Below are positions 2,919-9,564 of a DNA stretch of 64,000 nucleotides, one piece after another. Within the stretch, counting starts at the first letter, position 1. Every line of letters begins with the position of its first letter. Both the position numbers and the translations under genes were made by a program. The notes under the pieces were generated by a model that worked only from the letters and a program-made list of their open reading frames with translations, did not search any database and had not been told where the DNA came from. Origin of the DNA: Blastocladiella emersonii ATCC 22665 (taxonomy: Eukaryota; Fungi; Blastocladiomycota); assembly GCA_025594325.1 (NCBI GenBank), contig JANHCV010000007.1:1736001-1800000 (forward strand). Reading direction: 5' to 3'.

Positions 2919-4127
2919 CTTGGACTAGAGAGGGCAAGCAAGCGAGCGAGGAACAGGGCCCGTTGTGGGATGGGAGGGTTTGGGTGAGGGTCTGAGTGGG
3001 AGGGTCCAGAGTGGGCGATTTGTGGGAGAAGGGCGGAGTGAGGGAAGCGCCAGCGACCGCGACTCCGGCGATGACCATGATCCGTGGAGCGCTGGGGAAC
3101 AGGACCGGCCCTAGGTGCGCTCGCGACACGCCCACGAACACAGGCATGAACGAGACCACCACGGGGGGCGCTCGAGTATACCTGCAAACGCCACCGCGAT
3201 CGCCGGCGCCACGAGAACGAGCAGCGTCCGCGACTTCCGAGTCGCAGTACCGGACGCTAGCCCATTTTCACGGACGCAACGGCGACGCAGGTTCGCCCGA
3301 CGTGAGCCCCGCGCGCCGTCCACCACCGTGCGTTCTGCACACGAGGAAACGCGCACGTCCGTTTCAACGGCAGCGCCGACGCCGGCCCCCGTGCGGAGGT
3401 TACAACGTCGAACACAAATCCGTTCCGCGGAACGTGCGGCGGCCGTCCCATCCGCATTCGGCGATGGTGCCACCAGCGGTTTCGAAAATGCGATAGTGGC
3501 GCGGCCTAGGGTTGTCTCGAGCGGCGATTCCGCGAGGTGCCACGCAGCATCCATCCGGGCGTTTACAGCGACGAGAGGCTCCTCGCATCACCCGGATGGC
3601 GCCGCGTGCCCTCCATAGTAGGGCGTCGGTCGGCCGCTCGGGGGCGTAGGTCGGCCATGCGCCGTGCAGCGTGCGGGCACGGTCGTCGTCGTCGCGGTCG
3701 TTGCGCGTGGTGCGCGTGGGGTGCGTGATGCGTGTGTAGGTCCGTTGCGTACAATCTGGACAAATGTCGAGGAGGGAGCGAGTAGGGTCTGTGAACGGGG
3801 CTTTCGTAGCAGCAGGGGCTGGGCGGGTGGGCAGGGATGGGAGGGGACACGTGAGTGGGCTGAACTGGCTGACGCCACACGGTGAAGGACTTACGCTTCT
3901 GCCTCAGCGGCGGCGCCCCCGCCCTTTTGTACGGCGCGCTCCCTCCACAGCTTGCGGGCTTGCCGCGCGCTGCCGACGGCCGGGTTACGTCAGGCTCAGC
4001 CTGTGCATTTGTCAGCTGTGCTGTGCACGACGCGAGCGAGGCCGCGTCGACTCAACTCATCTGGCGAGAGAACATGGGCGACGCAACGAGTGTATTCCTC
4101 GCGGGCGGCGTGACGCGCCCTCCTCGC

Positions 4128-6897
4128 TCAGTCTTCCTCCTCTTCCTCTTCCTCGAGGATGGTCATGGACCGCTGCGGGCGCGGCGGGATGCCCCCGCGC
4201 GCTTGCTGCGAACCGAGTCCACCCGCAAAGTCAGCCTCGCCCTCGGGCAACGCCTCGCACCTCGCGCATCCGTCGGTGCCGTCACACCCGCCGTCGCCCC
4301 CATCGTCCTCGGCGGCCTCGGCGCGCGACGCGAGCTCCTGCTCGAGCGCGACGAGCGAGTTGCGGGCAAACGCGTGCCAGCGCGCGGCTGGCGCGGGGCT
4401 CGCAGCCGGCCACTGCGCGTCGGCGTCGGCGGGCGGGACGACCGCGGGGTGCTGCTGCGCGTCGCGCGGCGAGCGGCGGAGGCGTTCCGCGAGCAGCGTG
4501 TACGTGGCGAACTCGAGCGACGGCGTGCGCGTGGCCGCGAGCGCGCGCACGCGGTGCGGGTCTGGGAACTCGCTCGGGAACTGCTGGCACATGGAGCGCA
4601 CCAGGGCCTCGTTGATGGGCACGCGTGGGGGTGGAGGGAGGGGAGTGTCCGGGTCGGTGCACTCGGCGGGGGTTTCCGAGGGGACGAACAGGTGCGGGCA
4701 GTCGGCGCGCTCGAGCGCGAACCATGCGGCTGACTGGACCTCGTGGATGGTCGCACGCTTGAGCGGGTCCGGGTTGAGCATGTGCACGATGAGGGCGCGG
4801 AGGTCTGTTCACGCTCAATCGTCAGTCGAGTGCTCAAAGCACGGCCATGCAGCTGAGAAACATACCGCTCGACATGGTCGACGGGAAATCAATCTGCCCC
4901 GCCATCATCTGCTGGTACATGCGAACGAGGTTCCCCTCGTCGAACGGGAGGTACCCGGTGACCATGACAAACAGCGACACGCCGAGCGACCAGATGTCCG
5001 CGGGCATGCCGGCGTACGGCTGCTTGGCGAGCATCTCGGGCGCCGAGTAGCTGATGCTTCCGCAGAACGTGGTCATGAGTTGGTGCTGCGACTCGAGGAT
5101 GTTGGTGAACCCGAAGTCGATGAGCTGCACCTGCCCGTCGCCGTTGATGAGGATGTTGTCGGGCTTGAGGTCGCGGTGCACGATCCCGCGCGAGTGGCAG
5201 TACTCGAGCGCGTGCGCGACCTGCGCGACGAGGTGCCGCGCGCGGGACTCGCTCATGCCCGTGCGCAGCTCGTCGGGCAGCTGGCCGTCGCTGAGCAGCC
5301 GCAGCTGCGAGCCCGTGCCCGCGCCTACGGTCGCCGACGCCACCGGTGCCGCGCCGCGCTCGCGGTCCGCCCGGAGCGCGCGCTCGACCTGGGCCGTCCG
5401 CTCGCGCGCGTGGTTGACGAGATACTCGAGCAAGTCTCCTCCGGGCTCGAACTGGAACACGAGCTGGACGGCGGTGGGCGTGTCCATGACCTGGAGGAGC
5501 GACGCGATGTTCGGGTGCGCGAGCGACGCCGTGACGGCGATCTCGCGCATGGCCGCGTGCCACGACGCCGGGTCGAGCTGCAGCGTCGCCTTGTCGAGGC
5601 ACTTGACGACGACCGACTCGCCCGTCAGCACGTGCGTCGCCAGCTTGATCTTGCCCGCAGACCCCTCGACGAGCGTGCGCTGCATCGCGTACATGGCGGG
5701 TGTCGAGGTCATGGCGACGGGGCGCAGCGAGGCTACGTGGATGTGGCCCTCGCCCGTCGCACCGAGGCTCGGCGTCGGGTATGCCGGGAGCGACGCGGGC
5801 GGTTGCTGTTGCTGTTGCTGCGGCGTGGACGGTTGCGCGGCAGGCGTCGACTTGGAGAAATCGACTACCACCGGCGACGCCTCCACCGTCTCGGTCTCCC
5901 CCGCGGTCGAGACGTCTGCGAAGGACCGAATGAGGCCCGACAGCGCGGCGAGCCGTTCAATCGGCGTCATCTGGGCGGCGTCCGCGGGTGAGACGGGCGC
6001 GACGCGTGGGTCGCGGAGCGCGAACGCACTGCCGTGGCGCGCGGGGGTTGCCGAGAGCGACGACGACGTTGGGGTATCACCGCCGTCCTCGGCGAGGTTG
6101 CCCGGCGCGCTGATGGCGCGGTTGCCCGGACCCAGCGCGTGGTCGCTCGGGACGCGCAGCGGAGACAGCGTGTTGCGGTCGAGGTGTCCGGCGCTCGCCG
6201 TCGGGCGCGAGCGCGCTGCGGCGGCGGAGAGCGAGAGGAGCTTGATGTTGCCGTTCCCGCTGTCGCCCGCCGACGAGTCGGTCTCGGCCCCGCCAGCGCC
6301 GCTGGTCTGCAGCGACTCGCCGGCGCTGCCGGTACGGTGCGAGAGCGGCGTCGACGACGAAGCCGAAGTATGAATTGCATCGTGGCTGTGTGCGCGCAGG
6401 GATCCCGACCGGCCACCGGCCTCGCCGTCGGGCGCCGCGAGCCGCGTGGTGGGGACGGGCACGAGGACGTTGCCGGCGGACCCGTGGTGGCCACCGCCGC
6501 CGAGCGCAGCGACCGAGGCGGCGGGGAGGCTCGACTCGGAGTGCGTGCTGCACGTCGACACGGCGAGGACGTGCGGGACGCGGTACCGGATGTCGCCGTT
6601 GGTGCCGGGCAGGCAGTCGCCCGACCCGAGCGTGTCGCTGTCGACGCTCAGGGTTGACGAGGTGGTAGACGACAGGCTGGAGGCGGTATAGTTGGTGGCG
6701 GCACGGGGCGGTTCAGGGACTCGCGCGACGACGGGCGACGGTGGGAGCGGGGTGGTCCACGCCGCGACGGACGAGGGCTCGCACGGCGCGGTGCGCGGCT
6801 CGGTGGCAGCAGCACATGACGGCGGCGGAGAAGGTGGCGGTTGCGGAGGTCGTGGCGGCAGCGGCTCGACCAGGGGAAGAAGCGGCGGGTGGGTCAT
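4128..6897 (-). CDS. Ser/Thr protein kinase, CAMK group (MARK/SNF1/KIN1-like), long low-complexity N-terminus; intron ~4805-4865
   Basis: VVVKCLDK, HPNIASL, HRDLKPDN, DFGF, TFCGSISYSAPE and DIWSLGV motifs. Splicing restores SSDLRALIVHMLNPDP. The start codon (MTHPP) is inferred. Confidence 0.9.
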
Positions 6898-7175
6898 GGT
6901 TACGAGGCCGCGAACATGCTCGGCGGCGGGACGGGTTGCAGGTGAGGTGGCGGTGGTGGTGTTGCAGCTAGTCGAGCCGTTTACATGCGAGATCCATGAG
7001 AGAGCGGAGCGATGTGGTGGGAGGGAGGATGAGATGATCACGAAAAAATACGAGACAAGGGGAGGAGACGAGGGAGACACGAAGCCACGCGACGAACATG
7101 CCGCCCGCCCTCTTTGCCGCCCTCACCTCTTCTCTCCCGCATCCTCCACGAATAGACCCTCAGTGCAACGTAAAC

Positions 7176-7659
7176 ATGTCGCAAGCGCCCGCCAACCAGG
7201 CCTGGAAGGCCACGACCACGGCCAAGCCCGCCGCGCCCGCGCCGTGAGTTCCCCTCTCCTTGCAGCCTTGGTGCCTCCCTGCTGACACGGGGCGACTCTC
7301 TTAGCGCCGCGGCACCCAAGCCCGCCGTCGACGACGACGACTGGGAGACGGACCCGGACTTTGTCAACGACGTGAGCGAGAAGCAGAGCCGGTGGGGGTC
7401 CAAGTCGATCCCGGAGACCATGGACTCGCGCACCAACGAGAAGGTCAAGCTGTCTGGTACGCTCTCCCGTCGCTGACACCGTCGCCGTGCGCCGTCACTG
7501 AACTCGCCCGCCCACGTAGAGATCCGCGACGCCGTCAAGGAGACGCACGACGCGGCGCGCATCGAAGAGTACAAGGCGACCTCCAACTTCAGCCGCGGGT
7601 ACGGCGGTCAGTTTGGCGTTGAGAAGGACCGCATGGACAAGTCGGCGCACCGCCACTAG
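7176..7659 (+). CDS. Miniature cortactin/HS1-like protein, 119 aa, 3 exons (7176-7243, 7305-7456, 7520-7659)
   Basis: Spliced product contains [25 protein letters not shown] and [17 protein letters not shown], i.e. the cortactin N-terminal acidic motif plus an HS1 repeat. Exon lengths sum to 360 nt. Confidence 0.9.
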
Positions 7660-7911
7660 CTCATCGTTTATATACGTGGACCGTTTGTGAGAGAGCGTGC
7701 GAGCGAGAGCCGCTGCTGAGCCACCACGAAAAAAACGCATGTCGCGAGGCCCATGGCGGCGGGTCATGCCGCGCCGCGTGACTGAAATCAACTCGCCCTC
7801 ACAGCGATCCCCGCTCCGCGCCACCCTCTGCGCCGCCGCCGCTGACCTCGCCACTGGGCAAAGAGAGAGAGATCGCCGTGACGACGTCGTAACGCAACCT
7901 CACACCCTACC

Positions 7912-9564
7912 ATGATTACTTCGCTCAAGTGGATCCGGCGCGGCGCGTGTGCCTCGGAGCCGCGCCGCGTGGTCGCCGACAGCGAGGAGTACAAGCGCAT
8001 GGCCGAGCGCGCGGGCTTCGAGCTCGACGACGCCAAAGACGAGCTCGAGCGTGCGCAGCTCGCGGCTGGCAGCGGCACCGTCGACGACGGCGACGAGGAC
8101 GGCAACTGGAACGACGGCGAGGACGGCGACGAGAGCGACTCGGGCGTCGACAGCGACGATGACGACGATGCCATGGACGTCGAGCCCGCTGACGAGCTCG
8201 CCGAGTACAAGCTCGACGACTACGACAACGAGCCCACGTCGGCAATTGAGAGTACGGTTTGCTCGCCGCTAGGTCACGGCTGATCCGTCCACCGCTCACC
8301 TGCTTCACATCACCCCCCAGACGTCAACATCTTCAGCAACGTCAAGTCGGTCGCGTACCACGCCGACGGGTCCGAGGACCCGTACGTGACCAACGTGGAC
8401 GACGAGCTCGAGGAGGAGGACGAGGAGGCGCTCCTGATCGCTCCCTACGACAGCGTGCTGGTGGTTGCGACCAAGGCCGACGACATTCCGCAGCTCGAGT
8501 TCCAGGTCCTCGAGGGCGAGCCCGACGAGGACGACGACGACGAGGACGAGGTCGCCGACACCCGCACCAACCTGTACACGCACCACGACGTGATGCTGCC
8601 CGCCATCGCGTTCGACGTCGAGTGGTTCGACTACGTGCCCGGCGCCAAGACCGAGTTCAAGTCGACGGCGCACTCGACCGACACGGGCAGCTTCGTCGCG
8701 GTCGCCGGCCACACGTCCGATATCGAGCTGTGGGACGCGGACGTGATCGACGCCATGTTCCCCGTGGCCGTGCTCGGCGCGCCGCGCGGCAAGGACGCGG
8801 CGGGCAACCTGCAGGCCAAGTCCAAGAAGGTCAACGACGCGTACCACGTGTCGTCGGTGCTGTCGCTGTCGTGGAACGCCAGCCACCGCAACTTCCTCGC
8901 GTCCGGGTCCGCCGACACGACCGTCAAGATCTGGGACCTCGACACGCTGAGCGCGGTGCGCTCGCTTGTCCCGCACGTCGCCACGCCGACGGCGCGCAAG
9001 GGCGCCAAGGTGTGCCTGACGCGGTGGGCGCCCGCGGCGCCGACGTGCCTGCTGACGGGCGGGTTCGACTCGTCGGTGCGCTTCTTCGACACGCGGTCGC
9101 CCGAGTCGGCGCTGCGCGTGAACCTGACGGCGGACCCGGAGTCGGCCGTGTTCAACCACCCGGCGTCGGACTCGCAGGTGTTTGTGTCGACCGAGGACGG
9201 GCACATTGTGCTGGTCGACCTGCGCAACGCCGCGTCGCCCGTGTGGACGCTCAAGGCGCACGACGGCGGGTCCGCGGCGTGCATCTCGCTGACGCCCATG
9301 GGCACGACGCTGGCGTCGGTCGGCGGCAAGGACAAGACGGTCAAGCTGTGGAACGTGGCGTCGGGCAAGCCCGAGCAGCGGCACGCTCGCCAGCTCCAGC
9401 TCGGCCAGCTGTTCACGTGCGCGTGGTGCCCCGACCAGGAGGGCGTGCTCGCCGTCGGCGGCGAGCGCGGGTCCGTCGTCCTCGACCTCAACATGAATGC
9501 CGTCATCACGGCGAACGCCAACTTTGGCGGCGAGGACGGCGACTCGGAGAGCGACGGCGAGTAG
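7912..9564 (+). CDS. PWP1: Periodic tryptophan protein 1 (WD40, rRNA processing); intron 8252-8320
   Basis: MITSLKWIRRG start, acidic region, NLYTHHDVMLPA, and WD repeats (LASGSADTTVKIWDL). Confidence 0.92.

Follow-up and report, generated by a model that had tools for sequence, protein, structure and literature searches.

A short, SH3-less cortactin/HS1-type protein in the zoosporic fungus Blastocladiella emersonii and its probable origin by C-terminal loss

Blastocladiella emersonii encodes a protein of 119 residues, here called mini-cortactin, which on the evidence of its alignments is the orthologue, in fungi, of the cortactin/HS1 N-terminal module, in a reduced architecture. Its gene occupies positions 7176–7659 on the forward (+) strand of the window, that is, the whole 64 kb stretch of B. 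emersonii DNA that was analysed. The reading favoured here is that of a gene under selection, orthologous to the N-terminal part of cortactin, that lost its C-terminal part in the fungal stem lineage and whose product would bind Arp3 and act as an NtA-like stabiliser. The probability assigned to this account as a whole is roughly 0.7.

Direct reading and translation of the window gave a three-exon gene with a coding total of 360 nt (119 codons plus the stop), and all of the elements described in this paragraph lie on the + strand. Exon 1 (7176–7243) runs from the ATG into codon 23, of which it holds two bases, and encodes an N-terminal segment (MSQAP..WKA..) that is the counterpart of the MWKA start in animal cortactin; this N-terminus is kept in Catenaria (locus 3857–3910) and B. 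britannica. Intron 1 (7244–7304, 61 nt) is bounded by GTGAGT...TTAG, contains a CTGAC branch-point-like site, and would terminate the open reading frame if unspliced, at an in-frame TGA (7245–7247). Exon 2 (7305–7456) encodes the acidic region, the DDDDW-E motif with the codon for W36 (7342–7344), and the segment equivalent to the Arp3-surface “meander” of cortactin, and its conserved block is invariant across the alignments of relatives. Intron 2 (7457–7519, 63 nt) is bounded by GTACGC...GTAG and carries CTGAC sites, and the B. britannica gene is interrupted at the corresponding point, between ..LS and EIRD.. of the protein, by an intron as well. Exon 3 (7520–7659) supplies the remainder of the NtA helix, a linker, half of an HS1 repeat, and the TAG stop (7657–7659), which directly follows ...SAHRH. 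The codons split by the two introns are those of P23 and E74, and the splice sites of both introns are canonical.

An in-frame ATG also occurs further upstream, and the 26 open codons that follow it (7098–7175, +) are free of stops up to 7176. A start at 7098 would prepend an unconserved MPPALF... extension, given transcription from far enough upstream. The start at 7176 is preferred because the relatives begin at its equivalent, and the segment 7098–7175, which is not conserved in them, is probably 5′ UTR.

The spliced model is identical to a public GenBank protein of B. emersonii ATCC 22665, which has 119 residues and is named HS1 protein. The three exon translations also match the string given in the original prediction, which had proposed a spliced product of this length. 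Whole-protein searches used the identical GenBank protein, and the exons were otherwise searched singly. In a 2006 EST survey of B. emersonii, contig BeAS153 had “cortactin” as its best match (score 97) and was tabulated among the sequences shared with animals, in the class found only in animals (PMC1550239). The correspondence between BeAS153 and the gene at 7176–7659 is by name only, and it fits with expression of this gene. The 3′ end and splice junctions of mini-cortactin are probable in light of the public model, conservation, and this EST contig.

The likeness to cortactin is concentrated in exons 2 and 3. Searched singly, exon 2 matched PDB 8tah chain H, a 76-residue cortactin NtA, with an E-value of 6.6e-11, and full-length cortactin in PDB 8p94 (chain I) with an E-value of 3.8e-09; its residues 10–36 (7333–7413, +) align with cortactin residues 19–45 and are identical at 23 of 27 positions. 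For exon 3, the top-scoring stretch against 8p94 chain I corresponds to cortactin 59–102, in the same order as the NtA helix and repeat 1, and weaker matches were obtained to the other six repeats of that cortactin. The DDW (DWE) acidic motif is present, with W36 invariant in 40 relatives. A phmmer search with the 119-residue protein against 1.84 billion representatives returned 392 relatives with E-values of 1e-3 or lower, led by multi-repeat cortactins of 400–900 residues that are aligned at their N-termini. Similarity of this kind, as measured in these alignments, far exceeds chance, and the colinearity with the N-terminal part of cortactin proposed in the original prediction is borne out by the matched residues (approximately 19–45 and 59–102).

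An amphipathic α-helix is predicted for residues 72–93 (7450–7578, +), where the coding sequence is split by intron 2, and is the counterpart of cortactin I55–T76. In an AlphaFold2 monomer model, this helix is the sole confident element (pLDDT approximately 85), and its pattern of hydrophobic positions is largely retained in the alignment of relatives. For cortactin itself, the helix is likewise the only element that AlphaFold2 predicts with confidence (PMC11102864).

The repeat is incomplete. The Pfam HS1_rep model (PF02218), whose gathering cut-off is 27 bits, gave a score of 38.4 bits for exon 3 and one of 36.1 bits for the whole protein, and the match (7597–7650, +) spans only profile positions 1–18 of 36, equivalent to approximately residues 83–102 of the cortactin repeat at 80–116. 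Mini-cortactin therefore holds the first half of the repeat, some 20–23 residues of repeat 1, and the chain ends two residues past the HS1 match. An NtA followed by one HS1 repeat had been predicted; the NtA part of this description stands, and the full repeat has to be replaced by a half. No SH3 domain was found by Pfam in the 119-residue protein, and the helical and proline-rich region of cortactin is absent as well.

Such a short product could be an artefact of annotation or assembly, with the gene continuing to further repeats and an SH3 domain past an intron that escaped detection or by way of another 3′ exon. Animal cortactin genes do yield many isoforms, including products of approximately 200 residues in fish, which lends this explanation some plausibility, but it is very improbable given what lies downstream. 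The in-frame TAG is immediate, and a gene on the same strand begins only 252 nt further on. When the 64 kb window was read in all six frames, the HS1 motif G[FYW]GG.[FYW]G[VIL] was found once only, and tblastn detected no SH3 domain in the window, with matches confined to the NtA and the repeat. The tblastn queries were the SH3-bearing proteins of Fonticula, Thecamonas, and Chromosphaera together with one multi-repeat, SH3-bearing relative, and they also detected no SH3 domain in the 4–5 kb flanks on either side of five other fungal orthologues. Hidden downstream exons of mini-cortactin were rejected on the basis of these regex and tblastn searches, and the prediction of a fungal, SH3-less cortactin-type protein with a stop directly after the repeat and nothing cortactin-like beyond it holds. 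At the level of sequence, neither the window nor the five orthologous loci gave any sign of an extension to extra repeats or an SH3 domain.

The same explanation is opposed by conservation of the C-terminus, as Catenaria anguillulae keeps both the last residues and the place of the stop despite heavy synonymous divergence. The Catenaria orthologue has the identical SAHRH-stop ending, and of the 52 codons compared with B. emersonii in conserved blocks, 29 show synonymous differences only and one changes the residue, although these blocks were picked for conservation and hence the comparison provides no estimate of dN/dS. Since the codon differences are mostly synonymous, they point to purifying selection on the protein, its last ten residues included.

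The gene downstream (7912–9564, +) encodes an unrelated WD40 β-propeller protein with an acidic N-terminal exon, an intron at approximately 8262–8330, and Pfam WD40 matches. Judging from its MITSLKWIRRGA-type start, we presume that this neighbour resembles PWP1. The spacer between the two genes (7660–7911, +; 252 nt) would accommodate the 3′ UTR and the next promoter and is without HS1 or SH3 coding capacity. Upstream of mini-cortactin there is a protein-kinase gene on the reverse strand (4837–6900, −), and B. britannica also has a protein-kinase gene upstream on the opposite strand (its locus 390–2422, −), which suggests local synteny within Blastocladiella. The window contains precisely two copies of the 10-mer CACGAAAAAA, where 0.02 copies are expected by chance. 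These copies (7039–7048 and 7725–7734, +) are each followed by (T/A)ACG; the first precedes the ATG of mini-cortactin by 137 nt, and the second precedes the ATG at 7912 by 187 nt. In a host genome of 66% G+C, this 10-mer may belong to a promoter or a transcription start, or be associated with poly(A) addition. In Gonapodya, mini-cortactin is adjoined by a convergent gene on the opposite strand (its locus 5505–6658, −) with a faint SH3_9 match. This neighbour was rejected as a source of a cortactin SH3 domain, being on the opposite strand and giving no tblastn match to cortactin SH3 domains.

Short orthologues without SH3 were found in 13 zoosporic fungal species of the Blastocladiomycota, Chytridiomycota, and Olpidium, and the size of this family is 97–131 residues apart from over-extended, partial, and contig-cut models. 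A word-index search with the 119-residue protein alone retrieved 19 proteins, few of them fungal, so that a profile built from fungal members was needed. Human HCLS1, one of the matches to this profile, was set aside. Within the Blastocladiomycota, SH3-less members are encoded by B. emersonii (119 residues), B. britannica (123), Sorochytrium (128), Paraphysoderma (122), and Catenaria (102, a partial model whose exon 1 is visible in the DNA). Those of the Chytridiomycota, also without SH3, come from Gonapodya (112), Synchytrium endobioticum (101), S. microbalum (161, in a model over-extended at the N-terminus), Gaertneriomyces (97), Fimicolochytrium (131), and Quaeritorhiza (70, truncated where its contig stops), and Olpidium bornovanus (Olpidiomycota) has an SH3-less protein of 130 residues. 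No protein of Dikarya, Mucoromycota, or Zoopagomycota was named among the matches listed. We propose a grouping characterised by a DDW acidic block, a helix, and one repeat or a remnant of it, followed directly by the stop, which the B. emersonii protein as predicted fits.

Within this grouping, the repeat is the part that varies. A good half-repeat is retained in Gonapodya, Paraphysoderma, and B. emersonii, B. britannica ends eight residues earlier (GVEKKK-stop), and the Spizellomycetales and Synchytrium have only an SYGV remnant. Because the repeat is so unevenly conserved, what stays constant throughout the fungal family is the acidic block and the helix, and the repeat part of these proteins may contribute little. 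Intron positions vary as well. In the NtA block, ..QSRWG.. is split by an intron after the R in both Catenaria (locus 4094–4175) and the chytrid Quaeritorhiza (5133–5230), the NtA-block intron of B. britannica lies inside ..NDVSEK.. after the V (locus 4175–4243), and the B. emersonii block is free of introns.

Outside Fungi, three relatives combine the NtA and one repeat with a C-terminal SH3 domain (Pfam SH3 E-values 1e-13 to 1e-21). These are H696_04303 of Fonticula alba (381 residues), which belongs to the Holomycota outside Fungi; a 369-residue protein of the ichthyosporean Chromosphaera perkinsii (Holozoa); and “cortactin isoform F” of Thecamonas trahens (184 residues), an apusomonad outside Opisthokonta. 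The SH3 tails of all three have the cortactin-like pattern ..WW.G...G.FP.NYVE... Teleosts also have products named “cortactin isoform F” (about 30 entries), which are approximately 190–210 residues long and consist of the NtA, one to two repeats, and SH3; such short fish cortactin/HS1 isoforms resemble the architecture seen in Thecamonas. Of the groups for which the original prediction had called for a search, chytrids and Blastocladiomycota have short forms, and SH3 is kept in the holozoan Chromosphaera.

This distribution bears on the direction of change. The original prediction had interpreted mini-cortactin as an ancestral stand-alone module, in which case the short form of NtA plus repeat would have come first and animals would have added further repeats and SH3 later. 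Every named fungal member is indeed short and without SH3, and the repeats did multiply within Holozoa, from one in Chromosphaera to 3.5–6.5 in animals. Nevertheless, an SH3 domain of cortactin type is present in Thecamonas, in Holozoa, and in Fonticula, which belongs to the fungal branch of Opisthokonta, so that an ancestral short form would need two to three independent fusions of a like SH3 domain at the same site, where the alternative is one loss in the fungal stem. We therefore consider an ancestral short module quite improbable, and the SH3-bearing one-repeat relatives in three non-fungal lineages reverse the earlier inference. The polarity of the loss was assigned by parsimony over domain architectures, as the shared region of approximately 100 residues is too short, and for the most part invariant or unalignable, for a resolving tree.

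Since SH3-bearing one-repeat forms exist in Thecamonas, Fonticula, and Chromosphaera and one loss suffices to explain the fungal proteins, the fungal form appears to be derived and not ancestral, and it is most likely the result of secondary C-terminal loss. Under secondary loss, the ancestor would have had the NtA, one repeat, and SH3, a form that would survive in Thecamonas, Fonticula, and ichthyosporeans. The C-terminal helical/linker region and the SH3 domain would then have been lost in the fungal stem lineage, giving rise to the SH3-less family.

Mini-cortactin shares with animal cortactin (CTTN) and HS1 (HCLS1) the DDW acidic region, one nearly identical block, the amphipathic NtA helix, and the start of the first repeat (GYGG.FGVE.DRMDKSA). 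However, it has about half of one repeat as compared to 6.5 in cortactin and 3.5 in HS1, and it is without the helical/proline-rich region, the Src/Erk phosphorylation region, and the SH3 domain of the animal proteins, which amount to approximately 486–550 residues against 119. The forms of Thecamonas, Fonticula, and Chromosphaera are similar to the fungal proteins in having the NtA, the helix, and a single, often degenerate repeat, but they keep SH3, and those of Fonticula and Chromosphaera also have a charged coiled-coil-like region, whereas the fungal proteins end after the repeat. The other zoosporic-fungal orthologues are alike in architecture and size, with differences in the repeat remnant and in intron positions. 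A functional analogue exists in yeast Abp1, which binds Arp2/3 via acidic DDW-type motifs and is found on branched actin at endocytic patches, although its sequence and architecture (an ADF-H domain and SH3) are unrelated to cortactin. The closest counterparts in extent are recombinant NtA fragments, such as the 76-residue chain of 8tah, which have the same Arp3-binding motif, meander, and helix (PMC11102864). In comparison with these fragments, mini-cortactin is a natural gene product that continues for approximately 25 further residues into repeat 1.

How cortactin acts at branch junctions has been described by cryo-EM, in which NtA residues 21–79 bind activated Arp3 (PMC11102864). Residues D21-W22-E23 occupy a basic pocket of Arp3, residues 24–54 meander over its surface, and the helix I55–T76 lies in a hydrophobic Arp3 cleft, where it keeps the W-loop open so that the first daughter subunit can insert its D-loop (PMC11102864). 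Repeat 1 (80–116) bridges the daughter subunits DA1 and DA3 (PMC11102864). By analogy, the DDW motif of the fungal protein would insert into the basic pocket of activated Arp3, on the assumption that this pocket is conserved in B. emersonii, and the fungal helix would lie in the barbed-end cleft of Arp3. Mini-cortactin would thereby stabilise the contact between Arp3 and DA1 and displace the CA region of WASP-family/SCAR proteins. The short remnant of the repeat would reach DA1 at most, with no bridging of two subunits. Without SH3, there would be no recruitment of partners, and the protein, small and diffusible, would stabilise branches made by Arp2/3 or nucleated filaments. Binding to Arp2/3 and F-actin and stabilisation of branches are predicted from the conservation of residues that contact Arp3 in 8p94 and 8tah.

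Mini-cortactin may instead bind Arp2/3 mainly as a competitor or negative regulator that blocks WASP/SCAR CA, GMF, or coronin without stabilising filaments. As the full actin-binding repeat is missing, there might be no meaningful stabilisation of filaments, and since several fungi have a truncated or degenerate repeat, little contact with F-actin may be left. Competition between NtA and the CA of nucleation-promoting factors (NPFs) for Arp3 has been reported, but in the same work NtA favours Arp3 in its activated state (PMC11102864), and this preference suggests a role once nucleation has taken place and not inhibition. Moreover, isolated mammalian NtA protects branches in vitro, albeit more weakly than full-length cortactin (PMC11102864). 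A role primarily in inhibition is thus unlikely, and stabilisation by an NtA-like module remains the preferred reading.

More speculatively, the zoosporic fungi may possess a natural NtA-only cortactin that is a dedicated, diffusible stabiliser of Arp2/3-nucleated filaments without lattice binding or SH3. It would serve the zoospore, a stage that has no wall and is motile or amoeboid, and would have disappeared along with this stage in terrestrial fungi, in a family that predates the apusomonad-opisthokont split. This wider proposal is tentative and, taken as a whole, somewhat doubtful. The relevance to crawling zoospores and branch stabilisation suggested in the original prediction is likewise hypothetical.

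Part of this finding was already on record, since the gene is annotated in GenBank as a relative of HS1/cortactin and the EST table had flagged “cortactin.” A 2013 survey described cortactin as restricted to holozoans (PMC3748353). A literature search of a limited collection found no paper on fungal cortactin-like proteins beyond the 2006 EST table. The short family of zoosporic fungi, the SH3-bearing one-repeat forms of Fonticula and Thecamonas, and the direction of change appear to be unpublished. The novelty suggested in the original prediction is therefore retained for the fungal family, which is undescribed in the papers found, and has to be given up for the protein itself, which had been named in GenBank and preceded by the EST listing.

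In animal cells, branched actin is under the control of cortactin as one of its central regulators, and the roles of its N-terminal region as opposed to its repeats and SH3 have been studied with artificial fragments. An NtA-sized protein that selection appears to have maintained in three fungal phyla or more would provide a natural test of that region alone. Orthologues occur in two genera of the Spizellomycetales (Gaertneriomyces and Fimicolochytrium), an order that includes the transformable Spizellomyces, and if Spizellomyces has an orthologue, its function would be accessible in zoospores. The forms in Fonticula, Thecamonas, and fungi would place the origin of the combination of NtA, repeat, and SH3 before the opisthokont radiation, and the fungal short forms would add a clear case of domain loss en route to fungi.
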